Below are positions 25,818 through 60,900 of a stretch of 64,000 bases of DNA, in pieces; position 1 is the stretch's first letter; each line of letters begins with the position of its first letter. The translations under genes and the position numbers were made by a program. Under the pieces are notes generated by a model, which had not been told where the DNA came from, searched no databases, and was given only the letters and a program-made list of their open reading frames with translations. The stretch is from Lepidodermella squamata (lineage: Eukaryota; Animalia; Gastrotricha): contig JBLDXI010000020.1 of NCBI GenBank assembly GCA_047495785.1, positions 2,914,001-2,978,000 on the forward strand, given 5' to 3'.

Positions 25818-27429
25818 ATTATAGGCGACTGTCAATTTTGATGAAAACGCAGCAGTTTCTCCTGCTTTTTCCTCATGGTGCACGAAAGATATGATCATGA
25901 AAGTATTGAATGGTGCAATCACTGTGAATATTTTAGGAACTACGATGGAAGACATTCATGGCCCAAAATACAAGGAAATTATTTTCCTTGTACGGGGATG
26001 GCTCTTGAAGAAATTCACGATTACGCGATGTCAAAAATGGAGGCTATTGGATTCTTTGAAATTTTTTTGTTCCAATACATATTTCTGGTACAATACGACA
26101 GAGCACTCGCGTTAGGATTGATACTGAATGAGACCGAGCGATTGTTAGCTGCTCGAAACATGACCTTGGCTGATTGGACAACAAGAACCTCGAATTTCAA
26201 GCGCAATAGCCAGGATATTATTGGAATAATGAAAGAAGCCATATACAATCTACGAAATGTCTCAGGCATGAAAGGTCAGTACTCATTTGATGCCGCAACT
26301 GCACAATCTTCGGGATCTGTGCCAATTGTTTTTCAAGAGATAATCGTTGTCAGAAACGAAACTACACGAAAATATAAATCAATGCAATCAACAATAGCCT
26401 ATTATAAGAGAGCAACGACCCGTATCCGCTCACTATTCTTTGGTCAAAGAAGCGATGGAAAACGCCGAATAATTTGCCCCCGAGAGATGCTCTCGAGATT
26501 TCTCAGCAGATTGTGCCTGTTTGGAGTAATGCTGTCAAATTAGCGTTAGGGTTACTTGTATCCATAGAAATTGTCACTCTGATTGTTGCCGCAAATCTAG
26601 CTGTCAGGAGAGCCCGGGTTCTATAAAATAGAGCCTCGGTGATGATGCTTACTCTGGGCCAGGTTACCTTTCTTTGTCATAATAACATATCGGCTATTGA
26701 AACCAAGGACAAAGTTGAAATAGGCAGGTTATGCCTGGTTTCAGTTGTTCTGGTTTGGGCCGGGTTTTCTTTAATTGTGACTTCTATTGCTCAATTAACG
26801 ATCGGATTCGCAAAAAGAATGTCGTCATTCCTGGTAATAAGTTTTGGATGGGTCAGTATTCAGGCTATTCTGATAACTGCGGGGGCGAATTCTACAGCTT
26901 TTGACGTGAAGGAGAAAATGCTGGCATTTGAGATCTCGCCAGAGGATGCTAGCTACGGTATTCAACCTTTTCGCCTGGAATGCCAGATCCTCGAAAGACT
27001 TCTGTTTGGCTCGGCCAATTCTTTGGTGCTAACGAGCTCTGCTTGGTATATTGCAACTTCTGCTGCTCACGAAACTTTCAACTTCTGTCATATATATCAG
27101 CCACTTTGCACGGGAGGCACTTGCGAAACGCCCGCTTCAAGATGAGATAGCTATCACTTTACGCCGCAATTTTGCTGCTTGGAGCAGCTTTCTTCATAGG
27201 ATCATTGAGGCCTAATGACTACCAGTACTTGGCACTGCTGATCTCATCCATCTCGTTACTGATCGGAGGTGGTTTGATTGATTTGCTGTTCTTTGAAGGT
27301 AAAATGACACCATAGCTATAAAACGTTCTTTGATAGTGCAATTTTTCAGCTATGATCATTGAAAGGCGAGATATTCAGTCCCGCAAAACTCGAACGACAA
27401 CGAGTACAATCACATTGCGGAACCACTAA
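25818..27429 (+). pseudogene. Class C GPCR pseudogene, R3 (5'-truncated)
   Basis: Homology starts mid-exon 2 (ATVNFDENA). Frameshifts at ~25980, ~26410 and ~27045; in-frame stops at 26624 and 27148. Last exon resembles R2. Confidence 0.85.
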
Positions 27430-34816: not shown

Positions 34817-37377
34817 ATGTTGGTTGAATCGCTTGTAATAGTCAATATTCTCTTATTAAGTGTCGCCGTCGGAGATGATCAAGGCCCCATGAAAAAGTGG
34901 AGCCTCCGAGACCCAGTCCCAGATTTCGTATCAACCACGACCTACGACTCAACTAAAAATGGATCCAATATTGAGAAACGACCCACTATTACTTTGTCCT
35001 TCCTCGCTGAGTATCGCAGTCCGATTTTTCAAATTGGCCCGATTGGTTACCTAGCAGCGTCATTTGCGTTGAAGCGGCTTAAAACGTTGGATAACTGGCT
35101 GCCAAATTATGATATTCAGCTGGAAATGCGAGACACAGGCGTAATTTTGATTCAATTTTGCAATCTATGCAAACTATCCATTCCTTTCCCTTTTCACAGT
35201 GTTTGGACGCATCAGCTGTGGCTCAGTTCGTCAATAGCTTGGAACAGAGTTTCAACGGCATAACCGATCGATTTCCACTTGTTGGAATCAATGATTGTGG
35301 AATGGATGCCACACGCCTGTCTGCTCTTATGATCAAGAATTACAACATGATAGGTATTACTCTGCTACAGCAGCATATGGACTTACTTTTCAATCGTAAA
35401 ATGTATCCTAATTTCTTTCCTCTTGGGGAGAGGGGTGACATTATTTGCATAGCTCTTGCGAAGTTTATCAGAAAAATGGGCTGGAAACGAGTTTCGTTGC
35501 TCTCGGATACAAATTCCTACAGCTCAATGCTCGAACAAGGCTACGTCAAATGGTTCGAACAATTCGAAATCTCTCTTGTATACTTGGTTCGCTTCAGAGC
35601 TTACACTACTGACGAGTATGAACTTGGGTCCAGTTTCACTGAGCTTGCATTGAGAAAACCAAGAATTATCATTACGCAGAGTGGCAACACGGCAACATTT
35701 GCGTGTTATCTCCATAAATTCGGCTTGATTGGGACTAGTTATGTTACTATTATGGCTACAAATATGTTTGATGTGAATGCAGAGGTTTCTCCTGTTCTCT
35801 CTTCATGGTGTTCGAAGGAAATGATAATGGAAGTATTGAATGGTGCAATCTCTGCACAGCAGTATGGCTCCACAATGGCTGACATTTACGGTCCTAATAC
35901 TAAGGAGATGACGGGCGCAAGTATTGGCGACATGGTTGATTACGCGAATTCAAAAGTGGAAGACGCAAATTTCTTTTCCATGTTCTTAATGCAATACGAC
36001 AGAGTTCTCGCCGTTGGGTTAATTTTAAATGAGACCGAGCGATTGCTAGCAAGTCGTAACATGACCTTAAGTGATTGGACCACAAGATCTGAAAACTTCA
36101 AGCGGAATGGCCGGGATATTGTTGGAATCATGAAAGAAGCTATCTACAGCATTCATAATATCTCAGGCATGAAAGGTCAGTACTCATTCGATGCCACAAC
36201 TGCACAATCTGTTGGATCCATGCCGATACTATTTGAGGAAATTCATGTAACTAAAAATAGTAATACAGGAAAATATATATCAATGCGGTCGACATTAGCC
36301 TATTATAAAAGCAACGACCCAGAGCCTCTAACAGTTCGGTGGTCGAATATGCGATGGAAAACGCCGAATAATTTGCCGCCGAGAGATGCTCTCGAGATCA
36401 CCCACCAGCTTTTGCCTGATTTGAGTAATGCTGTCAAAATAGCATTGCGAGTTCTTGTATCCATCGAAATTATCGCTCTGTTCGGCTCTTTAGTGTTATC
36501 CGCCAAAAATGCTCGGGGTCTGCTGAATAGAGGGACGTTGTTGACATTGGCTTTCGGCCAACTGACTGTTCTATGCCATATTTACGTTTCGACCATCGAA
36601 ACCAAAGACAAAGGTGAGCTTGGTAAGATGTGTCTGGCAGCAGTTGTTCTTGTTTGGGCGGGGTTTTCGTTGATAACGGTATCAATGTCTCAATTGATCT
36701 GCAGATTCGCCAACAGTCTTCAGTCTTTTTTGCTCTTCAGTTTCGGCTGGGCATGTCTTCAAGCTATTCTGATAACCCTGAGTGCGAATGCGACAGCGTT
36801 TGACATAAAGGAGAAGATTCTTCCTCTTGAGATATCGCCAGAGGATGCGAGCTACGGTATTCAACCTTATCGCTATGAATGCCAGATTCTCGAGCAGTTG
36901 TTGGCAGGGTCGATGACCTCGTTCGTTGCTAGCATTTTCGCCGGCACATCGCAACTCGCTCTCCTGATCAAAACATCAGCCACTGTAATTTCAGCAAATT
37001 TGCACGGTAGAACTTTGCGAAGCCCCCGCCTGAAATTCAGATCGCTTGTGCTATACGCAGCGATGTTGCTGTTGGGAGCAGCTTTCTTTATAGGATCCTT
37101 GAGGCCCAATGACTATCAGTACCTGGCTCTGTTGACCGCATTCCTCACATTATTGATCGGAAGTGGATTGATTGCCTTTCTCTTCTTTGAAGGTAAAAGC
37201 ACACCTTGTGAAATATTAAGATTTCATTTCAATTTTGTAGCTTTTGTGGGAGAGGTGCCGGAAATTTATTCACGGAAATCACGAGCACCGAAACTGAGCC
37301 ACGCGCCAATCAGCCCTGCGCCGCCAGCTACTGGAAACTCGTTTTACAGGAACCAAAATAGCCCGAAGCCCGAATGA
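34817..37377 (+). CDS. GABA-B-like class C GPCR, R5
   Basis: Intact. Carries a 6-aa deletion (MQYDR versus QYIFPVQYDR). Its second intron is in frame and stop-free. Confidence 0.88.
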
Positions 37378-39838: not shown

Positions 39839-41250
39839 ATGGCGTCAACGCTAATACGAGAACTGCTTCTCATTTACTTCCTTGCAACTCTCGGGCATGG
39901 CTTCATTCGACTCAGGTTGACGAGAGTTCTAACAGGCCAGGCCCTAATGAATCGGATTCATTCCGATTCGTTGGAGCACGACCTTCGACGATTATTTGGC
40001 AAGAATATTGACCAGCAGAGCAACATGCCCATCCGCTACTACAACGTTAGAGATTTTCGGATCATATTGCTCTATATTCTAAATATATTCTATATTCATA
40101 TCATCATCTAAACAGAAGCAGTATTACGCTGAAATCTCGATTGGAACTCCTCCTCAAAAGTTCAAAATTTCCTTTGACACGGGCTCGGCTTGTTTGTGAG
40201 TTGAAACCTTGTGAAGCGAATTTTACGTAATTTATGTGAGTAAAGCATTGTCCCCTCGATCAAATGTATCAGCGATCGCTGCCTAAATTACACCCGTTAT
40301 GACAGTGCGGCATCCTCAACCTACATCGCAGACGGAAAGCAGGTGGTCGTTGGTTACGGCCCGGTAGAGGGCAACGTCGCTTTTCAAGGCTACGTAAGCA
40401 TCGACGACGTGCAATTCGGGGACATCGCCCTAAAAACAGCTAGATTTATTGAGTTCACAAAAATCCTCGAATTCCCCGATGACTTTGTGACCCCGTATGA
40501 CGGACTATTTGGCATGAACACAGTTAAGAACGATTCGGAGAATTGGGGACCTGGTTTGACAACATTCCCCGCAATGATGCAGCAAAATCTATTGGATGAG
40601 CCTATCGCGACTTTTTACATGAAACGTGAGCCGAATTCCTTAGATGGCGGGGAGGTGATTTTGGGTGGCAGTGACCCAAGCCTCTATGATGGAGAGCTAA
40701 CGACCCTGAAAACGGTCCCTCATCCTGCAGGATGGTGGGTCGTTCAAATGGATGGTGTAACTCTGGGGGATCAGAATTTCTGTCCTTCAGGCTGTAATGT
40801 CGCGGTAGATACCGGGATGCCGAAAATTGCTGGATCTCCAGCTAATATCCAGAAGCTTCACGCTGCTATTGGAGCTCGTGTTATCCGACCAGGAGGGCAT
40901 GAATACGTTATTCCCTGTGAGAAGTAAGATTCATTTTTATTGGGGTATCGTTGCTAATTTTCCAGTTTTCCAGGATACCATCTTTGCCGGACATTACATT
41001 CACATTTTCTAGCCGTCCATTCATTTTAAAGCCGCAGGACTACATCATAAAAACTGACAGCGATGGAGACTTCGCAGCGAGTCTTTGTGTCACAGTATTC
41101 GCGCCGTACCCATCCATTCCGAGACAGGCTGGGTTTGATTGGGTTTTGGGCGACGCTTTCATGGCACGAGTTGTTACTCAGTTTAATTTCGCTAATTTAA
41201 CCATTTCTTTTGGCCAGCAAATGAATAATGCTTTTATTGGCATCGCGTGA
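39839..41250 (+). CDS. A1 aspartic protease (AP3), close paralog of AP2
   Basis: [23 protein letters not shown]; VAVDTGMP; WVLGDAF; 4 exons. Confidence 0.92.
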
Positions 41251-42650: not shown

Positions 42651-45537
42651 ATGCCAATCTTTCAACATAACAGCAGAGTTCATTCGGAGGGTGTTGATGA
42701 TATTCAGAATGACACTTTATCAAAGTGCTGCCAGAGTGCATTGTCTCTCATAGACGCCAATCCAAAGACCAAACTTGGTAGGTCGCTTCAGCTCTCGCAG
42801 GTTTGTTCAACGAAGAGCATCAAGCGAACATGAATTATTTGCCCCTTCAAATCCAGATATGCATACTCTTGGCAATCGCCATAGCGGCAACTTGCGTGCA
42901 AATTTATACCGACGTCGAACTTTCCCAATCTAGGAATCGTAAATCGGCAAAGATTATCGTAAGTTTCAAATTCTCGGGTTTCTCTCGATCGTGATTTGTA
43001 ACGACTTTTTCAGAGTGTCATGGAGGAAGTTTTCGAAATTTACGACGTCATCAATCTCTTGTCATGTAAGCTATTTTGTATAGGATTCCTATCTTAACTA
43101 TAAACGTCTTATCATTTGTAAAAGCTGAAATGGAACCATCTTACGAGTAAGCAAACTCTCAGTTTCGTAAAAGAATAATAGTTTCACGGCTTTTTCTCTT
43201 CCTAAGGCACGTTAACGCACCGTATGACGTATTCTTGATGAAGGCCCAAAGCGCGATGCAGGAAGTGGACAAAGTAATATTTCAGTTGCAACCTCATTAC
43301 TAAACTTGTGATAATTCAATCTCTTCAACAGAAGTTGGTTTGGGCGACTAATTGGCCGACAGACGTTTCTGCACTGCCAAGCGCTCAAAGAGTGAATGTT
43401 ACATCGGCGTTCACTCTCCGAGCTGCAATCAGAGCAGTTCGAGACAGGAGAAAAATTTCCAACTCTACGACTGAAGCTGACGTTATATCATTCTATTCCG
43501 GAATAATCGACGCGCTGGCTATATTAGCCCGTACAAGCACTTTGAACTCGTTCAGGTTTCCGTTGTGGCAGGAATTTTTCACGGTTTATTACGCCTATCA
43601 AGTGGTTTGTAAATTTTGAAAATCGAATTCTAACATTATTGCCCTTCTTTCTCATCAGCGATTTAATTTTGGTAAATACTCAATGGTTGGCCAGAAGCTA
43701 GCAACTGAGAGTAAGTCTCAATCCGGTCTTACGATAAGGCTAAAAGATATCTTCCACAGATCGCACTGTCAACTTCAAAGATCCTATATATCAATCCTTG
43801 ATTCTATTCTACAATCGCTACCAAGAATTCATTAAGGTTTGCAGTGTAACCTCGGCATCTGGAAATGAGAAGGCGAAAAATTTGACAGAGCAGGAAGCTA
43901 ATCGTAATGTCGAAAGGATGCATCAATTCGTAAACCGTTCCTACCTCATTAAAATCAACGGATCATACTTAATATCAGACTTTTAAAAGGTTTTGGATCG
44001 TGATTTTGTCTCCTTGGACGGCGACGAATGGCGAAATGTGATGGGAGCTCAGGCTGCTAACATTCGGTGGGTTACACACTGGCTGACGCAGCGTATCCGT
44101 AGCAGTGTGGAGGAGTCGGTATATCTTTGGCCTTACGCCGACAAGCTGTGTAAGTGCTGATAAAGCTGAGTTTCATTATACTTCGAGCTTTCGGTTACTT
44201 TCAGCTGTTGGCTTGTTCGCCTCTTCTGCAGTTCTAATTTTACTGTGCGCTATTGCCCACTTAGTTGGGGCTTCAAAATTACAGCGGCAGATATCGGAAT
44301 CCCATTCCAACCTGAATTTGCTGTATGAATCCATGAATCTCATCTACGACTACGTGCCCAAGTCGCAAAGAGAATCAGTTAAACGCGGTATGACGGAGGC
44401 ATCAGTAGTTCGTTTTGCTCCAGGTTTGTGTTGATGCTCTGAAGCTTCTGATGTCCCTAACTCACGCCCTTTTCCCAGACACCTGTGTTATGGTCCTCGA
44501 CATCGTAAACGTCTCCAACCTGATGGAATCTCTCGACCTGGATGCATTTGAAACACTCATTCATGAATACTTCCAAACAGTTAATCTGGAATCCGAAGGA
44601 TATCATGACGACTAATAATGTCTTTCCTTTAGATCGAAACGACCCTGTTGAAGTACAACTGCTTCAAAGTAAATATTATCCAAGTCATAGCGTATATAAA
44701 TATGATATCTATTTTGCTAGGTTATGATAGCTGGTAAGTCTTGAAGAAACAGGCACGAATGATGAAAATCGTATATAATCCTACGCAAAATTGCTTAGGG
44801 GATACTTTATGCCTAGCTGCTGGCGTTGGAGAACACCATGCGACGGTAAAAAATCCTGAAAAAATTTAATATTTTTGATCGCTACTAATTCTTTCGCAGG
44901 ATCATATCTGGGAGGTATTCAGATTTGTACAACACCACTCTAGGTAGCCATAAATCCCTATATGTATAATTAGATGCTGTCACTAGCACTCGAGCTGGAG
45001 GAAACTTTGTCACAACGGGCGGAGGTATTAGATGAGAAATCAATAAATCTCCGAGTTGGACTACATTCAGGTTTTCCATAAATTAAAAAATCAGCAAAAA
45101 AGTTCACTCTTACTATCAAATTAGGTCCCAGTTTCTACCGGATTTTCCAGAGCTTTCGCTTCCCCCAAGTTGGCATTTTTGGACCCATTATGCAAATGGC
45201 CGCTCTGATGCACGCAACCGGCCTCGGTGAGACATTATTTTATTTGTATTATTTTCATCCATGCGATGCTTCCAGGGCGCAAGATTCATGTATCCTCTTC
45301 GATTTTCAATCGATTGAGTGGAACAGATGAATTTATGTTTCACGCGCGCGGAATCACTTCCTTATCCGTAAGTCCTATTTCATGCTTCCCCCATTTCTAA
45401 GCCAGATTAAACTAATTTTTTAAAAGGATGACGAAGCTCGAATCCCGTCTTATTGGGCGACTTGGAGCGACGAAACGGAAAATTACGACGAGACGTCTAG
45501 TGTCACCTCTGTCCTGCGAAGAGCGAAACGCGACTAG
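42651..45537 (+). CDS. NIT-type receptor guanylyl-cyclase-like protein GC1 (TM - extracellular helical domain - TM - class III cyclase domain), about 20 exons
   Basis: ANPKTKLGRSLQ then TM1; WP..DVISFYSGIIDAL; TM2; LIYDYVPK; DTCVMVLDIVN; YNCFK|VMIAG|DT; LRVGLHSG; FPQVGIFG; KIHVS; SYW. Confidence 0.8.
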
Positions 45538-46269
45538 AGGAAAAATGCCCCCGGATAAATCGGATATCGGAATCGGAAACAAAATACATTTTCATTTATC
45601 TGACCAATAATGTAGATGTTTTCCTAAAGTGTGATTTCACATGTGTATATAATATTTAGTCGAAAGGTCAAAGAAAGATTTCATGTTGTATAGATTACGC
45701 TGATCTTGGATGTTGCACTCATGCTGTGTATCCTTTGTCAATAAACAATTTTCACTCCAATTATTATCGTGATTATTTCTAGGACATCAGATACATATCT
45801 GAATGGAGTACCGTACAATAGCTCGGAGAAATATTGTCTTCTATTTTTTTGCGGACATAAGCATAACGAGTTGGATTGGTTGGCACGGGTTCGTGAGAAT
45901 CTTTAATACTCATCCAAGGGCTGAAAACATCATGAAAACATGGGAAGAGAATGAACTCTTTTTTAGTTCTTTCTTCAAATGCTTAATCGATAGATAATTG
46001 TTCAAGACGTCATTGTAATAATACTTAAAATTAAGGAACATCATTTTCTTTGCAATTGAATGTCTAATAACATTCGAAGGATTTTGCGCCTATATCGTGT
46101 ATCGATTTATTACGAAAATTGGCCTATGCTTGTTTTTAATTAATCTATCTACGCAAAGCCGCATAGGCATTGACGCAAAACATTCAGTTAGCTTCGAGTA
46201 ATTACAGCATGGTTTATAGAGGCCGGCTATTTATAAGCAATTTTTCTGATACTTTCCTGATGTCATGGG

Positions 46270-49200
46270 ATGCCGCTTTTTGGAAAATTATTCACCACAA
46301 ACAAACCGAAGTCCAAGGTCGAGAGCCATTTATTCACAGTCGCCAACTATTACATCATCTGCGCAACTCGTTTCGCCTTTACTACAACGAAAAAGATAGA
46401 GACTATGGCGACTCAGTTACAGCAGCAGCGGTTGCCTCCGAAGCATTTGGTTGAGCAACTTAGAGATACTGGAGAAAAGTCGCCGAATTCAGCGGTCACA
46501 ACTTTCCCTGCAACTGGCGGACGGTTAAAACCCGAGATAAAACTCGACTTGAGAATGCCGACCTTTCAAGGTTCAAAGGGAAAATCCGGTGCAGCGAAGA
46601 GAGACCCTATTGGCCGGTTTTTCAAGAAATGTTTTGATTTTGTCGAAGCTAATCCACGAAGCAAGAGAGGTCGAGCAACCCAGCTTTGTCAGGTTAGTTA
46701 ATTTTTGGGATATTTCTCTTTTTATAATCATGGAATGACGTTAGGTTTTCACGTTTGTGTTTATTGCGTGTGCCGGAATCTTCGTCCAAGTTTACACCGA
46801 TTGGGAGCTCGCTGTAGCTCGAGTCGACAGAGCGAAACGCGTCAATGTTAGTTTGAAGAAGACTTCGAAACTCCTCCCTTACATTGTCTGTATTTCAGGC
46901 TTTGAGTAATACGATTTTCGAACTGTATGACGTCATAAATTTGTTGCTATGTAAGTTCATACTAAGACTTGATTCCAGAGTAAATACAAATACATGAATT
47001 CTTTTTTCAGTGGAAATGGAACCATTCTATCAGTAAGAACAGAAGACAGTAAATTTTTGAAATCGTCTATTTCACTTTTTAGACATAATGCGGGGCCTTA
47101 CGATGACTTCCAAATGAACACTCAGAGTGCAATGAAAAACCTAGATACGGTGAGTCGGGTAAGATATTGAAAAAGGGATTCATTTTCCGTATTTTTCAGA
47201 AATTGCTCTATATATCGAGATGGCCCAGCGACCTATCCTCACTTCCGTCTGACAAACGGAAGAACGTGACAGATCCTATTGCTGTAAGAACCGCTGTGAG
47301 AGCTATGCGAGAAACTAGGAAATCTCCAAATGGAACAGCAGGTAATTCCCTCATGAAAACAGTATCGAAAATTAGTTCTTAATTTCCAGAGGCTGAAATC
47401 ATTTCCTTTTACTCGTCAATGGTTGACAGCCTGGCTCAGCTTGCCTTGTCAGAGACCATGCGATCCGACAGATTCCCGCAATGGGACGAATTCTTTTCAA
47501 TTTATTACGCCTTTCAAATGGTAATTTATGTCTCTTCACCTGATAACAAAATTTCATTATGATTAATGCAGCATGTCAACTTCCGAAAATTCACATTGGT
47601 CTTACATAAACTAACCGAAGAAAGTAAGTCGAAGTTGCTGGATGTTTGAAAGTTTCAAATTGTCCTCATTTTTAATTTTTAGACAGAACTATGGAATTCG
47701 AAAATCCGGTGTATCAATCTCTTCTGGGATTCTATGAGCGATACCTAGAATTTTCTAAGATATCCCTCGTTACAAGCATTGCCTCTATGGAGAAAACCAA
47801 CAATCTCACTGATCAGGACACCGCTCGTCAAGTCGACAGAATTCATAAAGAAGTACACATTATTGGCCGTTTTATAGGTTGCGATACAAGAGATATACTT
47901 CAATTAGAATTTAAGACGCAATCAGATTAGAATGTCATTCCGATTAAATTTACATCCTTTTTTCTTTTTTTCCATTATAGATTCTCAATCGGAATTTCGA
48001 TGCGCCAGGTAAAGAGGAATGGCACACAGTCACGTCAGCCCATGACGCCAATATAGTTTGGATAACGTCTTTTCTTCGAGTCCGAATTATCACCAGCATG
48101 GACGAAACTATCGGCCAATTTAAGTCGAACGAAATATTTTGTATGAAACTGGAGCCTATAGCCATATAAAAGTGCTAACATGTTGACGTTATGTTTCAGC
48201 TGTCGTATTACTAGCGATATCATCGATTTTAATTGCCATATCTGCTGCTCTGCATGTGATTAACACTTGGCGATTACAGGACCACATAATCGAGTGTCAT
48301 TCAAACTTGGAAACTTTGGAAGGGGTTTGCTCCGTTTTTGCTCTTGTTTTCGCTTCATATTTCTACTGCTCATTCTTCAGTCACTGAGTCTACTTTACGA
48401 CTACATTCCCAAAGCATTCGTTGGCCTGGTCAAGACAGGCAGGACTTTTCCAATCCGCCACTTCCCTGGTAAGTTGGCGCGTGGTTCATCGAAGGAACAT
48501 GGATGATATACTTTGTGTTAACAGATACTTGCATTATGGTAATCGACATTTCCAACATTTTCTCGTTTATCGATGACATGGAACACAGCGATCAATTTTG
48601 CCTACTGCTTGAAGATTTCTACATTACGGTTGGTTGGCTACTTATTAAGTCTATTGAAGGTATCCATCCCTTACACTTATAGCTCGAAGAGATTTTGGTG
48701 AAGTACAATTGCTTTAAGGTAAGGAGTGGTCCTAAGTAAAATTGTAAAACTAACCCGTGCCTTTCCTCAAAATAGATCAGCCTAACCGGTGATACAATAT
48801 GTCTGGCGTCGGGTGTTGGAGAACATCATGTCATGGTAACAAACGTTAACTACGATTAACTAATATATCATGGCTAATTTTTGCTTTGAACCAGGATCAC
48901 GTGGCGGAGGTAAAGACCTGTCATTCCAAATATATTGGGAATTTTAAGCGGTTGCGTCTTTAGATGTTGCACCTCGCTCTTGAACTAATTGATGCGAGCA
49001 AGGAGAAGGAGGATGTCGATGAAAAGCTACACCTACGCATAGGCATTCATGAGGGTATGCTTTTGAAGTCGATTTATCATAAAGCCATGAAATGAATGTT
49101 TCAAGGCCGATGCTACTCAAAAGTAATGACATCAACATACGTTCCCCAAGTTGGGATTTTCGGAAACCTGGTGAAAACTGCTTCGATAGTACATGCCGCA

Positions 49201-49495
49201 AGCCTGGGTATATATTCCTTGCCCCTAATGTATTTTGATCTGCTGGACCTTTATTTTCGTAGCGATGAAGGTGCTTGTCTCGGCTCCAATCAAGGAGCGA
49301 CTTCGTGATAATTCAGAATTCACATTTTGTAAACGTGGATTGATAAATAACGAAGTAAGCTATGCCATACCCCTTGATTGTTTCCGTTAATTACTTACGC
49401 ATTAATAGGATGAGAAATCAGCGATAATGACTTACTGGGCTGGATGGAGTGCAGAAGATGAAAATGATGAAACCTTTGGAACGGTGGATGAATAA
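46270..49495 (+). CDS. NIT-type receptor guanylyl-cyclase-like protein GC2
   Basis: Exon-by-exon paralog of GC1: DTCIMVIDISN, FK|ISLTGDT, LRIGIHEG, VPQVGIFG, MTYW. The start codon may be 46405. Confidence 0.8.
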
Positions 49496-49696
49496 AAAAT
49501 AATGAATATAATTCGGATCGAGAAGCTATCGATCTTAGAGTATTTTACGATATCATTCATTAGAATCTGCGTGTTTTTTTATGCCACGCGTCTGGCGCGT
49601 GGAACGGAAAGCTTGCTTTACTACAAAAAAAACACATTAAAAATGAGACTTCGTGTTGCTGCGTTCTAGCGTCCAATAAAAGGTTGATCGTTGATC

Positions 49697-50977
49697 ATGA
49701 TCACATCCATCGCTAGCATTCATAACAACAGCGCGGTTAATGTGGATTTCGAGGTTCGGCAGTTTTATTTGTGTGAATTATGCGGCAAGGAAACGCGAAC
49801 AGTTGGCGGTTTGAGAAGCCACCGCAATTTCATTCATGGAATCGTAGACGACCGAGCAGATTTGGAGCCATCCAAGGTCGTTCAGCTTGTGGTAAGATCT
49901 TAGTTCCCAGTTGCTTTTCAAGTTCTATTCTTCTTCCAGCCTTTGACCCCGCTGGAAACAGATGTAGCTTCAGCTTTTTCAAGCCCATCAGCAGTAACAA
50001 ACGAATCCCAGACCACCTATGGAACAGCTGATGATGCCTTACCTTCCGAAAATTCACCAACTCCTCAGATCGCCGATCCTTCACCTCGCATGCCTGAGCC
50101 AGAGATCTCGGCATCCCATACCTCGTCAAAGCTAGTTGAATTTTTGAATGCCAAAATTGCTAGTATGATTCGCAAAGTTTCTGGAAAACTTCAGATATAC
50201 GCAAAAGCCTTCTACAGCGTAAGCAAGGTAACTCAAATTGTTCAACTAAAATTCACATACAGGTCGGTCTCTATTTTGAAGGATGACCCGCTAGCCTCGA
50301 TATATCAATCAATTTTCCTTCTTGAGAAATCTGGCGATAAAGAGCTGATCATTTTCGCCCTGTTCGCCGAAAAGCAGCGAACGAAACCTGGCCGGGTATT
50401 TCTTTCTCACTATGGCGCTCCGAATTTCGTGAAACGGCTCAGTGACAAACACTCGACGTTTTACTCTGAGTTGTTCGCCCGTCTTGTTCTGGCCTACCTC
50501 AAATATCTGCAGCTAACTGGGCAGTACGATCATCTCTACGTTTCAACTCATCCGTTACTCAACGAGCCAACTGAGGGCAGTAAAGCTACAATCACTGGTG
50601 GATTGTTCGACTCCAATGACCCACTCAAGTTGTCGCCAGCTTGGCTACAGTCGATATTCAACGACGCGAAGCGGGTGATGATTTTTCACCCTGGTTGCGT
50701 AACCTTATTTTCCAAGCCTTATTACGTTTCTCAATTCTACATTAATGGTCAGCAAGGTGAGAGCGAAGAATCACCGGAGATGAATGCGCCTATCCATCTT
50801 TGTCGGCCAAAGTGTTTCGTTCAGTTCCGTGAAAGTCTTCAGCTCTCCTTCGAAACGGCAAAACAAGCATGCGTGGCAACCAAATTGATTTTCGACCCTG
50901 CTTCAGTGGCGTGGGCTAATAGCTTGTATCGGAAAAGAAAAATAAATGTAACTTCGGACTCATCTCGAAATGAATAA
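49697..50977 (+). CDS. C2H2 zinc finger + divergent p300/CBP (KAT11) HAT-like domain (ZK-A), 3 exons
   Basis: CELCGKETRTVGGLRSHRNFIH; SKLVEFLNAKI; SIFLLEKSGDKELIIFALFAE; RVFLSHY; LVLAYLKYL; AWL; LSFET..ATKLIF; C-terminal RKRK. Confidence 0.75.
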
Positions 50978-52104
50978 AGCTTATTTATTGGTTGAAATGA
51001 CTTTTAATGAGACTTGCAAAGGTGTTGCAATCAGTTGCAATTATATGAAGGGTTTCGTGTGCAGGGATTTGTGTGCAGCAGATGGAGAAAGCTCGATGAA
51101 AAATCAGTCAAATTACAATCGAAACCTATTTCGGCATTGTTTTATGCCGGACTTTTAGCCTTGTTTAGGAAATAAAACATAATTTGGGATTTTACACATT
51201 ATAGCTGTCAAGTCACTTTCGGGTCAGAAATTCACACATTTTCATATCGTTAACAGAAATACTTTGCCAGTTCAGAGATTATTGGCATATTAAAAATGTA
51301 TTCAATAAAACATTGTGGTGGCTCTCAGTCAGGTGTTTGCATTTTTTGCTAAATTCTCTATGATTGACCTGAACCAGACTCTGACCCCTAACTCTCTGTC
51401 CGTGGTAGGCCCCCAGTCCGAGTTGAATCGTAAAAAACAACACGTGATGTCCACACTTTTGGATCGATTAAGCAAGAATGCTCCGGATTGGACAACTTTC
51501 AAATCAGTTAAAGTGCACTTTTTTGACTTGCCACAAGTAACTTACCGAATGGAGTGACGAGTGACTGAAGAGTCCATGCCTCATGAGTTGAGGTAATGTT
51601 TCGTAACACAAAACAAGTCTGGCAAGTTTTGGTGATCAGATGATGTGTGCACTGGCCGTTAAAAAAATTTTAATGCCTAACGCCTTCACTCTTTCATCCC
51701 AATTCCTAAAATAGGATCCATGGCATCAATCTTAGAGGCAACTTGGGCTGAAATTGGCCAGTAATTTGCTATAAGATTTAGCATGGAGCATGGCTGCCCT
51801 ATAAAAACTCTGACATTTATTTTCTCCAAATTATTTGTCACAGATTCTGCCACGTATTTGAATCGCGTGCCGCCGGCTTCAGATGACGCGTGCTAGCGTG
51901 ACAAATAAATTTACGCTACGAACATGTGGAAGACTACAATCATGGTATTCAATAACAAATAAACATCGATCACAAACAAGGATTATTTTTAACTGCTATA
52001 TTATCACTTCATAGCCTTTATAGTTTTCATCATTTTCGCTTTTATTATTATTATTATTATCCTATCATTATTATTGTTATTGCGATAGGTTTATTCGTGT
52101 AAAA

Positions 52105-53412
52105 ATGATCAGTCTGCCGGCAGACAGTGCCTTGGAAGATGATTGGGACGTCATGAATGGCGACCTGATCCGACCACTGAATAAATGCGAGATCTGTGAC
52201 CGAGAGACAAGAACTGCCACGGGTTTGGTTCGCCATCGGCAATACGTTCATGGTATTGTCGATGAAAAGCCTCCTTCCCCAGTCAAGCCTTCAAAGACCA
52301 TTCAATTTGTGGTAAGTCTACTTTGTTTTCAGACGTCATCATTCATTTTCATCTTTTGTAGTATAAACCGACTCTGGCCACCTCGCAAGACATCGCACAG
52401 AGCAAGCAGGCCAAGAATGTCAATCAAGAAATCAGGCCAACTGCAAAAATTCAGCCTATTCCCGTTGATATTATTGGTAACAACAGCAGCATTGAGCCAA
52501 TTGATGATATTGTCCAAAGCCCCGCTATTCCTGCCTCGCCTGTCAAACGGCCTAAAGTCCTCAGCATCGTTCCTGTCAATGTTCCTGTTACTATACCAAA
52601 ATTCGGTATTCAAGAATTCATTAATCAAAAGATCGTTGGCGTAGTTCAAAAAGTGTCTACATCTCTTCAAATACATGCTAAAGTGATTTCGAGCTTCAGC
52701 AAGGCAAGTTTCGATGAAATTCCATTTCTTTTTGTTGAAATTCTGTGTGATGCTTCAGGATTCTATTTCGCGATCCATCTTCCTGTTGGAAAGATCCGGG
52801 GATCAAGAGCTGATAATTTTCCTCATCTTCACGGAGGAGCATAAAAATGACCCAAGCCGTGTGATTCTGTCACGATTTGGCGCTCCGAGCTTCGTCAAGG
52901 CGCTGAGCGAGAGCCATCAGGGCTTTTACTCCGAGCTGTTCGCGACTACGGTTCTGGCCTATCTCGATTTCGCCCACTCTTCATCAGCCTATGAACACCT
53001 CTACGTTTCGACCGAGTCTCTATTGAGTGAAGATGACGCGCAAACGCCGAGAAGAGACATTTTCAACTCTGTCGATCCGCTGAAATTTTCAGTCGCTTGG
53101 CTGCAATCGATTTTCATCGATGCTAAACGTTTCTCTATCATTCATCCGTCTAGTGATTTACTATTCGCTGGGCCGTTCTATGTTTCGCAGTTTATGAAAG
53201 CCGATAGCAAAAAGTCGAAGCCAAAAGTGTTTACGGAGGCTACTCATGAACGATTTCCTCGACACCTTACCGAACCACGGCGGTTCTCTGACTTTTGCCG
53301 CCGATTTCAGTTACGATTCGAAACAGTTGCAGAAGCCAGCCAATCTACCAAACAGATTTTCGAAAGCAAATCATCGGTAGAAAGCCGGAAGAGGAAAATT
53401 GCGGCGCATTGA
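52105..53412 (+). CDS. C2H2 zinc finger + divergent KAT11-like domain (ZK-B), 3 exons including a GC-AG intron
   Basis: CEICDRETRTATGLVRHRQYVH; IQEFINQKI; SIFLLERSGDQELIIFLIFTEE; RVILSRF; VLAYLDFA; LRFET..SQSTKQIF; RKRK. Confidence 0.75.
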
Positions 53413-53639
53413 GTTGTTTTTTTTTCGTTGATAAATTCTTGAAATAAAATCTTTTTTTTTCGTTCTCATCGGCTTTTGAAAATAACTCTCTCCATAACGG
53501 ACTAAGCATCACGGACTAGAATGAAGCCAATAAAAAATGCTTGAACTTCCTGTAAGATTTCCGAAACATATTGGAAACATACTGGAACTCTTCGTTCAAT
53601 CATTTCTAGTATGCAGAAGCAAATGGATGCAAATGGCTC

Positions 53640-53970
53640 TAAGAATTAGCTGGGACGCAATAAGAGTAAACGACATGAGGGCAAACGAGCTAAGAGCAGA
53701 ACGTCATAGAGCAATTTCCGATGATAAGCCAACGACAAAAAATGACACACGCGATTTCGTCCACGATTTGGTGTTTCGTCCGAGTTTTCAAGTGAAAGGG
53801 GAGCCAGTTTAACAGTAATTTAGGCTGCTTAATCGGTCTAAATTCGCTTGACAACTTTCAGAAAAAACCAAGTCGCGTGTCATTTTTTTCCTTGATTCAT
53901 CATCCAAAATTGCTCCTATATGCTCTTTGCTCGTTTTCTCCTAAATCGCTTGTCGCTTGTCCTTAATTCA
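53640..53970. mobile_element. Degenerate palindromic MITE
   Basis: Inverted blocks AAACGAGC.AAGAGCA..GAGCAATTT / AAATTGCTC..TGCTCTTTGCTCGTTT and AAAAAATGACAC..GCGA / TCGCGTGTCATTTTTT. Confidence 0.5.
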
Positions 53971-54426
53971 TATAATCATAAAAGTGTGCTGAAATGATTG
54001 TCATTGGTCATAGCACCATGCAAATCCCATTGTTATCGAATGGAGATGAATGATTGCACCTTTTTGGAGGAAATTATTTCACGGATAGCAGACCTCACTA
54101 TACTTCTGTAAGTACGTTTGTGCTAGTCCCACGTCCATCATTGGCGCTTGCACTGACCGCGCAAGTAGGACATGCCCCAGATTTCACAGATGACCATTTC
54201 TCTCTGGATTCAGAATCTAGCAATTAATTTTCTTCTTATTCCCGCAGTACATTAGTACTTTTCCCGATTTATTAAGAAAGAAGAAAAAGCATTATCCTAT
54301 CAATTTAGCTCCTGCACTGGTCATTATAATCCGGGGTAATAATGCAATCAGCCGCACGCGGCTTAGGTCATCTTCAGGGCTTTTTTAGCAGTTTCTTACC
54401 TTGCTTATTCGACATCAATTTCGCAA

Positions 54427-57400
54427 ATGTTTCTCGCTCAAAAACTCTCAAGGCCCTCAGAAAATATCTCAGCTTACATGAAGCATATCGCCCGGCCTTT
54501 TTACGAGCTGATGGACGACGAGGAAGTCGTTCGAGTGGCAGCAGTTGACCGAAGATCATCAGTTACAATAGTCGCCGATTCATTGCATAACGGCTGCTTG
54601 AAGTTTGGCGAATGTCTGCGGGCAAACCCGCAAACCAAAATCGGGAAATTTACCCAGTATTTCCAAGTTACTGTGTTCTCAGCAATTCTGATCACAGCTA
54701 TCTTCGTTCAAATCATACCGGAGATTGAACAAAGTACAGCTCGCAGTGCACGAACAACGCGTTTGATCAGGTTGAACAAAATGGTGTTCGAGCTTTACGA
54801 CGTCATTAATGTTTTACTCGGTTCGACCCACCATTAAACATCACTTGATCAGTATAAATTGCATTCCCTTAGATGAGATGGAGCCTTCTTACATGTACAA
54901 TCAAGGGCCCTACGATATCTTCCAGCAGAATACCCAAAAGCTAATGCAAGCTGTGGATATGGTATGTTTTGAGCCCCTCTTTTCGTTGAATATTTCATTG
55001 GGACCTCTTTCCTTTCCTTGAAAGAAACTCATTTACGTCGATAATTGGCCGACTGATCTGTCAGCTCTACCTGTAGCAAGCCGCGTTAACGTCTCATCAA
55101 TTCTCGTCCTGAGAGCTTCTATGAGATACATTCGCGAATCGAGAAAGGTTGATTTGTAATCCATTCCTTTTTCATCACACTCATGACATCTACGTTTTAG
55201 GCCGAAAATGGGACGGATGGTGATTTTCCATATTAAATGATATTCCGTTTTTGATTGATAATTCATGCACCAGAGGCTGAAGTCATCAGGTTTTACTCAT
55301 CAATTGTTGACAGCCTTGCTATACTTGTGCGAACGAGCACAATCAACTCTGACAGATTTCCGGGTTGGGGAGAGTTCTTCTCCATTTTCTACACATTTCA
55401 AACAGTAAATTCTCGGGTTGACTCATGATTCCCAAGCTTAATCTATTATACAGCTTATCAACTTTCGAAAGTATGCCATCATCACAACGAAGCTAATTGC
55501 TGAAAGTAAGGGAATAGTCGCGATTAAGAGAAGTTATTAAATAATATTTTATCAATAGATCGAACAGTCACACTCAAAGACCCAGTCTATCGATCCATAA
55601 TAGATTTCTATAGCCGTTTCAATGCTTTCACCACATTGATAGCCATTCCGTCTGATGCTGGCGCGGCAAAAGTTGCAAATCTGACTGATCAGGAAGCAGC
55701 TACTCAGCTCGAGAAACTCTACAGATATGTATGCTTCAGTTGCCTATTTTCTTAGGGTAGTGGCTAAACAACATATCTATGGAATTCCAGGTTGCCATTC
55801 AAGATTTCAGTACGCCCTTCGTAGACGACTGGGTTGCTGTCATGAACGCCCATCAAACACATATTAGCGATATCATCACATCTATGTCTGCAGTTACTCG
55901 CAAAGCTTTGGAATATAACTCTACAGCGTGGAGTGACCGAGATTTGTTGTGTAAGATGCATTCCAAGAAGTAGGCTTCATATTAGTTCATCAATTCTTAA
56001 TCTCAAGCATTGGCACTGTTCATCGCCGCTGTTGTTACGGCTGTCTTAGCCATAGTTCTACATTATGTCGCTACAGCACGATTGCAAGCCCAGATCCTTT
56101 ATTCCTACGGGAACTTGCATATGCTTAACGAGGTATGCATCTTATGGGACGTATCTTCTGATTACAAGGTCTTTTTAGGCCATGAATTTGGTCTACGAAG
56201 GTGTGCCGCCGTCTTTTGTCAAATCCGTGAAAGCCGGTCACAAGTCTAACCAGCCTTATCACTTTTCAGGTATTTTTGCATCAATCTGTGCTGTGGGCCC
56301 CCAACTTGTTATCTGTAACTCGTTGTTCACCATAACATTTTAAACCGAAGATACCTGCGTTCTAATGTTGGATATGTCCAATATGAGCAATTTGTACGCG
56401 TCACTTGAACCATCCGAGCTGCTCGATGTTTTAACATCTTACTTCTCCTTTGTAAGTACTTATCTCAATTATCCTCCGACCGAATGCAGTTGCCATTGTT
56501 CTCTAGATTGAAGAACACATCAACAGATACAATTGCTTCAAAGTATGTTTTATTTACGATTTTACTTGTAACAGGAAACTTAAAAACTTTTGTCAGATCG
56601 ATGTGCACGGTCTGTTAAAGCATAAGTACATTTCGACCAGCTATCATTTTCGGCTTCAATTTAGGAGATTCGTTTTGCATAGCGTCCGGCGTCGGAGAAC
56701 GACATATGATTGTGAGGCTAAACATCATCTGTCTAAAAGATTATTACATTTTTCCTCATTAGGACCATGTTGCTGAGGTATCTGTGGAATAATTTCCCAT
56801 TTTTTCTAATAACCAGTCGTTCCTCTTTGAAGATGTTGTTCCTAGCCCTTGAGCTGATGGAAAATCTTTCTGGGATGAAAATTGACGAGTACGACGTATT
56901 CATTTTTCTGCGGATGGCTCTTCACTGCGGTTGGTTCAATATTAACTCACCATTTGATTCACGCTTTGCCTTTCTTATTTGAAATCACAGGACCCTGTAT
57001 GGCAAACTTGTTCACTCATCTACGCCTGCCTCAGATGGGCATTTTCGGACCACTAATGCCAACTGTTGCTCTCGTGCACTCAGTTGCTTTACGTAAGCAA
57101 GAAGTATCATCTAGGCTCGCCTTTTCTTGGGCTATCCAACGACACCCCACTCATCGGGTTTTACCTAAGTGACCCAACCACTCAAAGTCTCATAGGAAAG
57201 GGAACTTTGAACTTCTACCTCTAGGCTTGGATTTCAGATACATATTACAGTCCTATTTCTACACAACTTGAAATTCGATTTACGCCAAAATTTCTGAGTC
57301 TTTAGGAAACTTACCTATTACGTCGAGCCTATCCATAACCGGCTCTTCAAGTTTGAAATCCTCAGATCGGAGAGTTCAACTTGTTGGTACGAAAATGTGA

Positions 57401-57728
57401 TTCAGATGACGATCGTTGATGGTGAAAATCGATTCCCCACCATATGAACTTCCAGAGAATGCATTTGTAAAGAATTCAATCTTATTGTATTCCTTTCAGC
57501 CAATCAAGTTCTGGTGACATCCGTTGTAGCAGAACGGCTTTGGGAGGTGGACGAATTTCTATTCCGCGAGAGAGGCCCACTTCGGGATAATGTGAATACT
57601 TAAATTATCTTTTTAAACTTCTTACCTTCTTTTTCATTCAATAGAAATTGGGGATAATTTCAACTTACGTTGCACAATGGGACAAAGGTGAGCCGGGTGA
57701 CGAAGACCAGAGCGTGATCGACTCTTAA
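54427..57728 (+). CDS. NIT-type receptor guanylyl-cyclase-like protein GC3
   Basis: ANPQTKIGK, TM1, EVIRFYSSIVDSL, TM2, DTCVLMLDMSN, FK|IDVHG|DS, LRMALHCG, LPQMGIFG, FRERG, STY. The start codon is uncertain. Confidence 0.8.
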
Positions 57729-57987: not shown

Positions 57988-60900
57988 TCAGAAAGTGGAT
58001 ACGCAAGCTTCGGAGGCCAGCAGGCTCAAATGGCGTAAGATGTGGGACGTCGATCGCGAGGCACTCGTCAACGAATCGAATCGCCAGTCGTTATTGCGGC
58101 ACTTTTCCTTGAATTTAGCCGCGCAGGACAGGTAGACCGGGGTTGGAATAATCGCCGAGATCGCGGCTTCAGACAAACTCGCCGCGGAATTGCTGCTATT
58201 ACCCCCGCCGATTTTCGGCATCAATCTCACGAGGAAAAATCGATAATGGGACATGAGGTCGAACAAAATCGAATCTCGCATCGATCGATTTTGCGTTGAT
58301 TTTTCGCTTTCAAACAACTGCCGGGGCGTTTTAGCCATGCGTTCGATAACAGCCGCCTCAAAACGATGCGGCCAATCGTCGCCGCGGTCGATGAAAACCG
58401 GCGGTTTGAAGGTGTGGTCCTTCTGGAATCGGTCGACCAGCGACTCGAAGCCTTGAACAACGCCCTGTCGAACGGTTTCTTCCAACGTCTTCATCAGCCA
58501 ATCTTGGCTTAGTCGAACTCGGCTTGTCGAGACTAGATTCGATCCGTCGTAGAAAATCGGGTCTTCGGACATGTTCGCGCTATTTTCGTTGTTCATCGAA
58601 ATGTCCTGCGTTGTGATATAAATCTGTTGATAGCCGTCGTTTCTCAGACACGTGATGTAGGCGGAGATGAGGTGTTTGAACAAATCGTTGTGCCGTTCGT
58701 CTTCCAACTCGTGCACATCGCCGGGTGGGCCGAAATGCGTGATGAAGGCGCATTTCGCGGCTGGAACTTCTTGTGCGAACAGGGCGAATGTGATTGACTG
58801 GACCGAGGTGTCGTTGCCGGCTGGGAGGCTTTCGAATAAAAATAGAGTGCGAGACGTGGACTCGAAGCGGAACGAATGCGGCAGTTGGAACATCAGTTTT
58901 GAAAGGCGAGTGAGCTATAAATAAATAAGTAAACATTTAGTAAACGCAACCACCTTAAAATAGGTCATGACCTCTTAAATAAATGCAATAAATGCAATAA
59001 GTGTTCGCTGTATCTATCTGTCGTAATCTTCCTTTGTGACCTAGTTTCTTCCTTCTGAAACTAGGTCACTAGCAATATTATAGGCGAGTTAGCTACGTTC
59101 GAGCTTTCAGAGATTTTTATGATAAAATTAAAAAAATCGTACCTCGAAAATATTTTTGATATTTGAAACTTGGCGGACGTAGATTTTCGCCGGTACATTA
59201 GCGGGTTTTGACGGCGCTGCTGCAGCATCAGTGGTAGTATCGGCTTCCATAACGTTGTCCGCATTGTTCTCCGTATTATCGGCCATTTTCTCGCGCAGAT
59301 AGCTCAATAGTTCTTCCTCAATTCGTAGGCTATAAGCCGAGTGAGGAATCGCTAAAAATTGAAGAAAAAATGATTTTAGATTTTTTGATTTTGTTAATTT
59401 AAGATTTTTAGAAATTTTATAAAATTTGAAAAAATTTTACTTAAAAAATAATAATTTTCGAATAAAGAAAAATCAGTAAAAATGATGAAAAAAATCGATT
59501 ATACCTTCGACGCTTCCTGCTGGCATTAATTTTTCAATGGGAATATCACTGAAAGCCGTCGTAGGCCGACTCATCAACTCGCTGCCATTCCCATCGTAGA
59601 CGTAATCATTCAACTCATCGCCATCAACTTTCGCCGAATTGTACAAGTGAACAAGGGTCCGATGGCGGGTAACGCCACCCTTCGTCGTGAAAAACACGCC
59701 GCATTCGTTGCACCGAGTCGTAACCGTTTCGCCCGAGAAGGTCTTCGCCGAATCACCGTTAGCTGTAGCGCCATGTTCCGTGGCTTGGTGAGAAATGAGA
59801 TCGCCGAGATTATGGAATTTTCGCTTTTTCTCGTTCGGGCACAGCGAGCATTTGAAACTGGTTTGATTGCCGGTCGAGCCGAAGTAGTGTTCACCTTCAG
59901 AATCACTTGAGCTTCCGAAATCTGGCTCTCGTGGTGCCGCATGAGATCTGCCCTATTTCAAAAAAGAATTAAATTTTTAATAAATTCGGAAAAATCGAAT
60001 AAATAAAATTCTCAATTTAAAAAATTAAAAAAAATCAGTGAAATTCAAAATTAAATTTTATTCAAATTTTTAGAGATCAATTACAATTTTGAAAATTAAT
60101 TTAAAAATTATTTTCCTCGGAAATCATTTTAAATATTTGAAATTTGAAGCACAAAAAAGTTGGTTTTGCAACTCACCTTATGAACAGCCAGGCCCATTTT
60201 AGTTCCGTATACCGCGCCGCATTCTTCGCACTTGAACATGACACTGGTCACTTCTTCATTCTCATTATTAGCCGCCTGTTGTTGGGCCGGTACTTTGATA
60301 CTTCTCCTCGGCAATTTCGCTTGCCCGTCGCCATTCGCCGCTGAATTTCCATTGCTATGGCTATTCGCATTATTCCCACCGCCGCCACCGTGAATTTTGC
60401 CGCGGTGAACTGCGAGACCCATAAATGTGGAGAAAATCACGTGACACTGCTCGCATTGCTGGTCGTTGTCGATGAATCTCTGCGCCGATCCTTCCCGCTG
60501 TCCGGCGCAGTCACGCGTCATTTGGTGCTGATGCAAGTCGGCCAGAGTTCGGAAGTAAAGCTTCAGCGGTCGGCATAGCGAGCATTCGTAACTCGTTGAA
60601 ATCGGCTCTTTGATGCTTTCTTTACTCGGCGCCTGTTGCGAGGGCGTGGAAATTTCGGCTTTTTCGACTTTGGCCTCGACGGGTTGGACAACGGGACGAG
60701 TAGCTGAACTAGCCGAGTTGTTGACTTGGCTGACGGATAGGCGGGATCGTTTGAGAACGGGCGCGCGATCTGGCGAGGAGATAGATCCATCTGACCCAGA
60801 TTCGGACACTTCTTCGTCGCTTATTTCACCTTCACAGCTCTCGGCTTCATCTTTTACCTACAAATTGGTATAAGTATTAGGAAAAGATTAAAATTAAGAT

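Follow-up and report, generated by a model that had tools for sequence, protein, structure and literature searches.

A 64,000-nucleotide (nt) stretch of the gastrotrich Lepidodermella squamata genome (assembly GCA_047495785.1, contig JBLDXI010000020.1, positions 2,914,001 to 2,978,000 of the forward strand), here called the window, contains three genes in tandem, genes 1 to 3, each encoding a receptor with two transmembrane segments (TM1 and TM2) and a C-terminal class III cyclase homology domain. In these domains and in those of six relatives, the residues that bind the catalytic metals are nearly invariant, whereas the residues that the other chain of a cyclase dimer contributes are lost. 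It appears possible from this pattern that the proteins are half-site subunits that depend on a complementing cyclase. Positions given below and in Table 1 are those of the window.

Gene models and relatives

The window is eukaryotic, with about 41% G+C and coding sequence split into short pieces of open reading frame (ORF). The gene models were rebuilt from the raw sequence; the junctions of gene 1 were joined by hand, and those of genes 2 and 3 by a spliced aligner with the gene 1 protein. Every junction follows the GT-AG rule, and none of the models contains an internal stop. Introns measure 46-65 nt, except for one of 128 nt in gene 2 and, in gene 3, one of 81 nt and one of 407 nt; the 128-nt and 407-nt introns stand apart from the other 53. 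The ATG of gene 1 (42651) and the stop codon of gene 3 (57728) coincide with the ends of the interval marked in a preliminary description of the locus. Three other ends are uncertain: the start of gene 2 was chosen by homology to the MPxFQ of gene 1, and an in-frame ATG also lies upstream at 46270; its stop was placed by read-through of the exon starting at 49409, so that its last exon is uncertain; and the start of gene 3 is the first ATG of its ORF. The three proteins are 39-43% identical in pairs and have intron positions in common, those around micro-exons of 13, 15 and 22 nt included. The 13-nt exon is merged with the next exon in gene 2 and the 22-nt exon with its neighbour in gene 3, and therefore introns have been lost or gained inside the family.

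The family is almost absent from protein collections. A phmmer search with a 92-amino-acid (aa) ectodomain exon gave nine matches among 1.84 billion representatives, two of them spurious repeats; the seven real matches are all short ORFs on metagenome, SRA or draft-assembly contigs, and no annotated full-length relative was found among these representatives. Profile searches of a 5.8-billion-protein collection with alignments of the ectodomain (A1) and of the cyclase domain (A8) yielded nothing beyond fragments of these metagenome relatives, and a scan of metagenome DNA with a tighter alignment gave no match. Six further full-length members (L001a, L005a, L006a, L006b, L006c and L008a) were rebuilt from contigs by the spliced aligner. 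Together with genes 1 to 3 they form the set of nine proteins, from at least two species, to which the counts below refer; pairwise identity within it is 24-44%.

Exons are fewer and longer in the relatives than in genes 1 to 3. The member most closely related to the window genes, on a short SRA contig (L010), has the same intron positions as they do. Three members stand in tandem on one contig (L006, 7527-14871), and contigs L001, L005, L008 and L009 come from the same sample set, which suggests that the animal behind these metagenome contigs has at least six paralogues and that tandem expansion recurs. The neighbours of the relatives are of animal type: Ig/fn3, rhodopsin-type G protein-coupled receptors (GPCRs), Sushi, tyrosine kinase and a QVR/Ly6-like gene. 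Overall, genes 1 to 3 are tandem paralogues of a rare, lineage-expanded family of animal receptors with two transmembrane segments.

Catalytic positions of the cyclase homology domain

By profile comparison, the cyclase homology domain is closest to those of animal receptor guanylyl cyclases. Against solved structures, the family profile from A8, window exons included, scored 94 bits with NPR1, 84 with GC-C, 83 with the alpha-1 and 59 with the beta-1 chain of soluble guanylyl cyclase (sGC), and 58 and 44 with the adenylyl cyclase domains VC1 and IIC2. Pfam scans were made with single exons, not whole spliced proteins; exons of the relatives matched PF00211 with 71.9, 50.5 and 29.8 bits (cut-off 21.9), and a single window exon matched it weakly (E 0.09). 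The 206-aa exon of L005, which holds TM2 and most of the cyclase domain, aligns to human NPR1 with an E value of 4.4e-19. The register relative to canonical cyclases was taken from tool alignments, of L005 to NPR1 and of the window exons to L005 in A8. At four catalytic regions NPR1 and L005 read SDIVGFT and CDI-NTA, KVETIGDAYM and KIDVVNDAFC, RIGIHTG and RIGIHVG, and PRYCLFGDTVNTASRM and PRICVFGEALEMAALI, respectively.

Class III cyclases work as head-to-tail dimers with composite active sites: one chain provides the Asp pair of a site, and the second chain provides the Asn, the Arg and the specificity residues. The motifs quoted for all three genes in the preliminary description were found in place in the spliced models, and its account of which residues are kept and which are altered agrees with the alignments. 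Both metal Asp (D1 and D2) and the Arg of RxGxH are kept in genes 1 to 3. The region of the Cys/Asp specificity position reads PQVGIFG in genes 1 and 2 and PQMGIFG in gene 3, and that of the transition-state Asn and Arg reads IMQMAAL, LVKTASI and LMPTVAL in genes 1, 2 and 3. Downstream of a conserved RG the KGKG motif is gone (RGITSLSDDEA, RGLINNEDEKS and RGPLRDNKLG); in the relative L006b, VMIESE aligned there with VKVKGK of the C2 domain of AC5.

Conservation was ranked over 177 alignment columns of the nine members. D1 is Asp in all of them and is tied first, as one of 13 invariant columns. D2 ranks 16th, with Asp in eight members, and the Arg of RxGxH 24th, with Arg in eight. The Glu/Lys specificity position (M, S, D, N, E, E, F, D, Y) ranks 165th, the Cys/Asp specificity position (G in six members, then L, C and V) 76th, the transition-state Asn position (Q, K, P, I, P, P, E, E, Q, without a single Asn) 124th and the transition-state Arg position (only L, I or A) 63rd; the KGKG lysine, which was not ranked, is absent from all nine. 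The proposal that homodimers lack a complete site follows from this split of residues and is strengthened by the nine members, with D1 in 9/9 and D2 in 8/9 against Asn and Arg in 0/9. A homodimer, or any dimer within the family, would have metal sites but no complete catalytic site, because the Asn, Arg and specificity residues of a head-to-tail dimer come from the other chain.

Wrong exon choice, or decay of the genes to pseudogenes, could also give such a picture. The models are predictions from genomic sequence with several micro-exons of 13-22 nt, and the start codons of genes 2 and 3 and the last exon of gene 2 are uncertain, as described above. However, 58 exons are joined without a frame break, at junctions whose positions are conserved between paralogues. 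In L005a, L006b, L006c and L008a the catalytic positions lie inside single exons of 116-206 aa; since the same losses are found in these long exons, they are not an artefact of splicing. In a six-frame scan of the 64-kb window, none of the motifs N..R, KGKG, ETIGD and DIxGFT turned up in any further exon, and a fourth cyclase-like gene was not found either, so that the different exons restoring Asn and Arg that the preliminary description had considered are not present in the window. An artefact or gene decay is thus highly improbable.

Ectodomain and surroundings of the genes

The nine proteins share one domain order: a short cytoplasmic N-terminus, TM1, an ectodomain, TM2, a linker helix of about 50 aa and the class III cyclase homology domain. 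A kinase-homology domain is absent in the family. The ectodomain spans 281-289 aa between the two hydrophobic segments, and the linker from TM2 to the cyclase domain about 55 residues. The ectodomain has 3-5 N-x-S/T sequons, four of them at conserved positions, and cysteine is nearly absent from it; it is predicted to be all-helical and N-glycosylated.

The preliminary description had assigned the genes to the NIT type. Animal NIT guanylyl cyclases (NIT-GCs) lack a kinase-homology domain; their ectodomain lies between two transmembrane segments and is followed by a signalling helix and, at the C-terminus, a cyclase domain (PMC1592074; PMC7400543). They resemble the present family in domain order, in a cyclase domain of receptor guanylyl cyclase type and in a multi-copy, lineage-specific expansion. 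The best match to Pfam NIT (PF08376), on L006b, reached 18.8 bits (E 0.0023) and is sub-threshold, since the gathering cut-off is 24.9. The matches on L006b had E values of 0.0023-0.032, and that on L006a (14.3 bits, E 0.054) is sub-threshold as well. Both lie at profile positions 61-133 of 239, a register that would fit the whole NIT profile inside the ectodomain. Of the 15 exon sequences in A1, four, belonging to two independent proteins, matched NIT, and no other family was matched by more than two; among the 24 sequences of a further alignment (A4) no Pfam family recurred. When single exons were scanned, NIT was matched neither by any window exon nor by exons of 190 and 223 aa in other relatives. 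The assignment is weakly supported, by the architecture and by two sub-threshold matches on relatives (E 0.0023-0.054), with no match on the window genes themselves.

Most family members have an H1 motif E-M-x-P-x-Y, whereas the NIT domain has E-R-G at this point. An AlphaFold2 model of the 223-aa exon of one relative, the longest ectodomain piece contained in one exon, is all helical, with low confidence (pLDDT 52.7); with this low-confidence model Foldseek gave nothing at E<=0.001, and its best-probability matches were generic four-helix-bundle sensor domains of chemoreceptors. Profile searches of the PDB with the ectodomain alignments returned neither NasR, whose NIT domain is a double four-helix bundle (PDB 4AKK), nor a sensor domain. 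Taken together, the ectodomain is probably a remote NIT-type helical sensor and a putative member of the NIT family. An internal duplication of the ectodomain was also considered, as MAFFT had stacked second-half exons on first-half exons, and was rejected: hhalign of the two halves gave a probability of 0.35%, no better than a reversed control.

The cyclase domain also sets the family apart. NIT-GCs in the literature match Pfam NIT, and their cyclase domain is described as 'highly conserved'; in the present family NIT stays below threshold and the catalytic set is incomplete, genes 1 to 3 lacking Asn, Arg, Glu, Cys and KGKG. By contrast, NIT-GC1 of Platynereis, an active enzyme dependent on nitric oxide, makes cyclic GMP alone (doi 10.1101/2023.08.02.551600).

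Several other gene families surround genes 1 to 3 in the window (Table 1). Interleaved with the three cyclase genes is a second paralogous family of three copies, in which a C2H2 zinc-finger exon (CELCGKETRT..HRNFIH or CEICDRETRT..HRQYVH) precedes a domain of about 240 aa. This domain had no sequence match in Pfam or the PDB. An AlphaFold2 model of it has low confidence (pLDDT 51.9, pTM 0.60); a Foldseek search of the PDB with the model gave 46 matches at E<=0.001, all to p300 or CBP acetyltransferase domains, with a probability of about 1.0 and a TM-score of about 0.40. Tentatively, the model suggests that a zinc finger is fused here to an acetyltransferase fold like that of p300/CBP. Upstream of the cyclase genes, in ORFs of 657-739 aa, a Pfam ANF_receptor domain precedes some six or seven hydrophobic segments, as in class C GPCRs; four intact copies are 73-84% identical, and a fifth, at 25875-27145, which falls into two ORFs, may be disrupted. 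The best database relatives of the aspartic protease exons are only about 41% identical, and therefore the source animal is far from the annotated genomes in the collection. A search of Rfam gave no match. Of the two paralogous Cys-rich ORFs, that at 6012-6581 ends with a partial Kunitz/BPTI match (E 1.9e-4).

Table 1. Features of the window, with the three cyclase-like receptor genes first and the surrounding genes last (positions in nt)
Feature	Position	Strand	Remarks
Gene 1	42651-45537	+	19 exons, 626 aa; two-TM receptor with cyclase homology domain; introns 49-65 nt
Gene 1 ectodomain	42908-44148	+	aa 68-349; TM1 42857-42907, TM2 44207-44266; 4 N-x-S/T sequons; from hydropathy
Gene 1 cyclase homology domain	44423-45465	+	aa 423-603; 9 exons including 13- and 15-nt micro-exons; from alignment A8 to relatives
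Gene 1 LDIVN	44496-44510	+	D1 is D430; Asn433 in place of phosphate-loop Gly (codon 44505-44507)
Gene 1 KVMIAGD (T follows)	44666-44803	+	spliced across micro-exon 44721-44733; Glu/Lys specificity position Met; D2 kept (D474)
Gene 1 RVGLH	45052-45066	+	Arg520 kept
Gene 1 PQVGIFGPIMQMAAL	45163-45207	+	Cys/Asp position Gly; transition-state Asn to Gln, Arg to Leu
Gene 1 micro-exons	44721-44733 (13 nt), 44900-44914 (15 nt), 43125-43146 (22 nt)	+	positions conserved with counterparts in genes 2 and 3
Gene 2	46555-49495	+	20 exons, 611 aa
Gene 2 ectodomain	46796-48139	+	aa 64-345; TM1 46745-46795, TM2 48202-48261
Gene 2 long intron	47853-47980	+	128 nt
Gene 2 cyclase homology domain	48468-49447	+	aa 417-596
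Gene 2 IDISN	48542-48556	+	D1 is D424; Asn in place of phosphate-loop Gly (codon 48551-48553)
Gene 2 KISLTGD (T follows)	48716-48793	+	Glu/Lys specificity position Ser; D2 kept (D469)
Gene 2 RIGIH	49036-49050	+	Arg kept
Gene 2 PQVGIFGNLVKTASI	49144-49188	+	Cys position Gly; Asn to Lys, Arg to Ile
Gene 3	54427-57728	+	19 exons, 646 aa
Gene 3 ectodomain	54718-55949	+	aa 98-379; TM1 54667-54717, TM2 56010-56069
Gene 3 cyclase homology domain	56269-57680	+	aa 452-631
Gene 3 LDMSN	56368-56382	+	D1 is D459; Asn in place of phosphate-loop Gly (codon 56377-56379)
Gene 3 KIDVHGD (S follows)	56540-56669	+	spliced across micro-exon 56597-56609; specificity position Asp; D2 kept (D503)
Gene 3 RMALH	56911-56925	+	Arg kept
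Gene 3 PQMGIFGPLMPTVAL	57029-57073	+	Cys position Gly; Asn to Pro, Arg to Leu
Gene 3 long intron	57093-57499	+	407 nt
C2H2-finger family copies	49691-50977, 52105-53412	+	
C2H2-finger family copy	57988-58893	-	
Possible C2H2 ORF	60129-60809	-	
ANF-receptor ORFs	15984-18020, 21957-23930, 25875-27145, 30021-32048, 35158-37377	+	five in tandem, mostly single-exon
Aspartic protease exons	10872-11543, 12672-13259, 40343-40927	+	pepsin/cathepsin D-like; Pfam Asp, E 1e-40 to 6e-28
Paralogous Cys-rich ORFs	6012-6581, 8420-8893	+	signal-peptide-like starts

A possible partner-dependent half of a cyclase site

The combination of residues in the family is known from subunits that make up half of a cyclase site. 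The C1 domain of AC8 has both Asp (ADVKGFT and ILGDCYY) but neither Asn nor Arg (DVWSWDVDIANK), while its C2 domain has neither Asp (ASIPGFA and TIGSTYM) but both Asn and Arg (DIWGKTVNLASR). In sGC alpha, which reads LFGNNVTLANKF at this site, the Asn-Arg pair is absent. Both sGC alpha and adenylyl cyclase C1, like the family, keep both metal Asp and the RxGxH Arg and miss the Asn-Arg pair, and the family profile scores higher with alpha than with beta (83 vs 59 bits) and with C1 than with C2 (58 vs 44 bits). We give a probability of roughly 0.45 to the reading that the proteins are half-site subunits, which would lend the metal half of the site to a complementing cyclase partner; it is drawn from sequence comparison. 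Each protein would contribute the metal- and phosphate-binding half of one active site, in a role of C1/alpha type, and pair with a cyclase encoded elsewhere. The partner would have to bring the Asn, the Arg and the specificity pair, for which a fully canonical receptor cyclase would suffice, and the divergent ectodomain may tune the activity of the heterodimer via the linker helix.

Several observations weigh against this reading. The preliminary description had the C1/alpha half kept and the C2/beta half lost; this holds for the pattern of AC8 C1 and sGC alpha, but the RxGxH Arg, on which it also relied, is not diagnostic of the C1 half because C2 and beta domains carry it too. The phosphate loop DIxGFT is itself altered, a feature absent from that description: its Gly is Asn in 9/9 members and the subsequent Phe-Thr is not kept, giving the family pattern D-I/M-x-N-x-S/F. 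All solved cyclases in the alignments (NPR1, GC-C, AC8 C1 and mycobacterial cyclases) have an unaltered loop, and sGC alpha and C1 keep it, unlike the family with its invariant Asn. Judging by the alignment, this change could abolish or alter triphosphate binding. The Gly preceding D2 is Asn in 3/9 members, D2 itself is lost in one relative (Ser in L001a) and the Arg in another (Cys in L006c). Finally, no complementary type of cyclase was seen in the window or among the nine members, all of which are alpha-like, whereas sGC alpha and C1 have a known complementary half, genetically linked or fused. Their N-terminal domains (H-NOX/PAS, or a bundle of six transmembrane segments) are also unlike that of the family.

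Receptors with a pseudo-cyclase would account for the change in the loop, for single members in which D2 or Arg has drifted and for the occurrence of one type only, together with the loss of the C2-side Asn, Arg and KGKG in all nine members. In such receptors the domain would be kept as a dimerising, conformation-transmitting or nucleotide-binding module and no complex would make a cyclic nucleotide; signalling might go via bound effectors, or by sequestering or inhibiting real cyclases. It is a close rival of the half-site reading, and we hold it to be a possible though still doubtful explanation: in proteins only 24-44% identical, metal ligands kept in 9/9 (D1) and 8/9 (D2) members would be surprising for a module with a purely structural role.

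It is also conceivable that homodimers are active by themselves via other residues; they might then use another substrate or make another product. The metal Asp pair is conserved, as is the overall fold, and the phosphate-loop Asn with other family-invariant residues could form a remodelled site. However, the transition-state Arg position is hydrophobic throughout, and the Asn and specificity positions vary freely, unlike those of a remodelled functional pocket. Moreover, it is established enzymology that loss of the transition-state Arg or Asn cuts cyclase activity by orders of magnitude. Self-sufficient unconventional cyclases are accordingly improbable.

For the half-site reading, the contrast inside the domain matters most. 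D1 and D2 were held fixed while the neighbouring catalytic positions drifted freely; the most likely reason, in our view, is that the metal half is still supplied to a site whose other half comes from a partner. A wider proposal, that the family consists of diversified ligand-tuning subunits with the metal half only, all dependent on one shared catalytic co-receptor cyclase, appears rather unlikely at present.

To our knowledge, receptor guanylyl cyclases are usually taken as self-sufficient homodimers, and ODR-1/DAF-11 is the sole established exception. In Caenorhabditis elegans, ODR-1 and DAF-11 form an obligate heterodimeric receptor guanylyl cyclase, each monomer supplying part of one site (PMC5225109). 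Like the family, they are receptor cyclases, of single-pass type, with an incomplete catalytic set per monomer, and they are used in sensory signalling (PMC5225109). The family differs from them in its helical ectodomain, its two transmembrane segments, the absence of a kinase-homology domain and the single half-type seen. Precedents exist for NIT-GCs, for half-site cyclase subunits and, in one case, for a heterodimeric receptor cyclase; in the literature searched, a NIT-like clade with two transmembrane segments and a uniform alpha/C1 deficit, a conserved Asp pair and an invariant phosphate-loop Asn is not described.

The half-site reading would extend a partner-dependent design to a second receptor architecture, with two transmembrane segments and a helical, probably NIT-like ectodomain. 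It also carries a warning for annotation, since such genes would be labelled 'guanylate cyclase', yet could not be one alone. If the wider proposal were true, the family would represent a co-receptor logic for cyclic-nucleotide chemosensation, in which the phosphate-loop Asn would mark a subunit-specific hold on the nucleotide.

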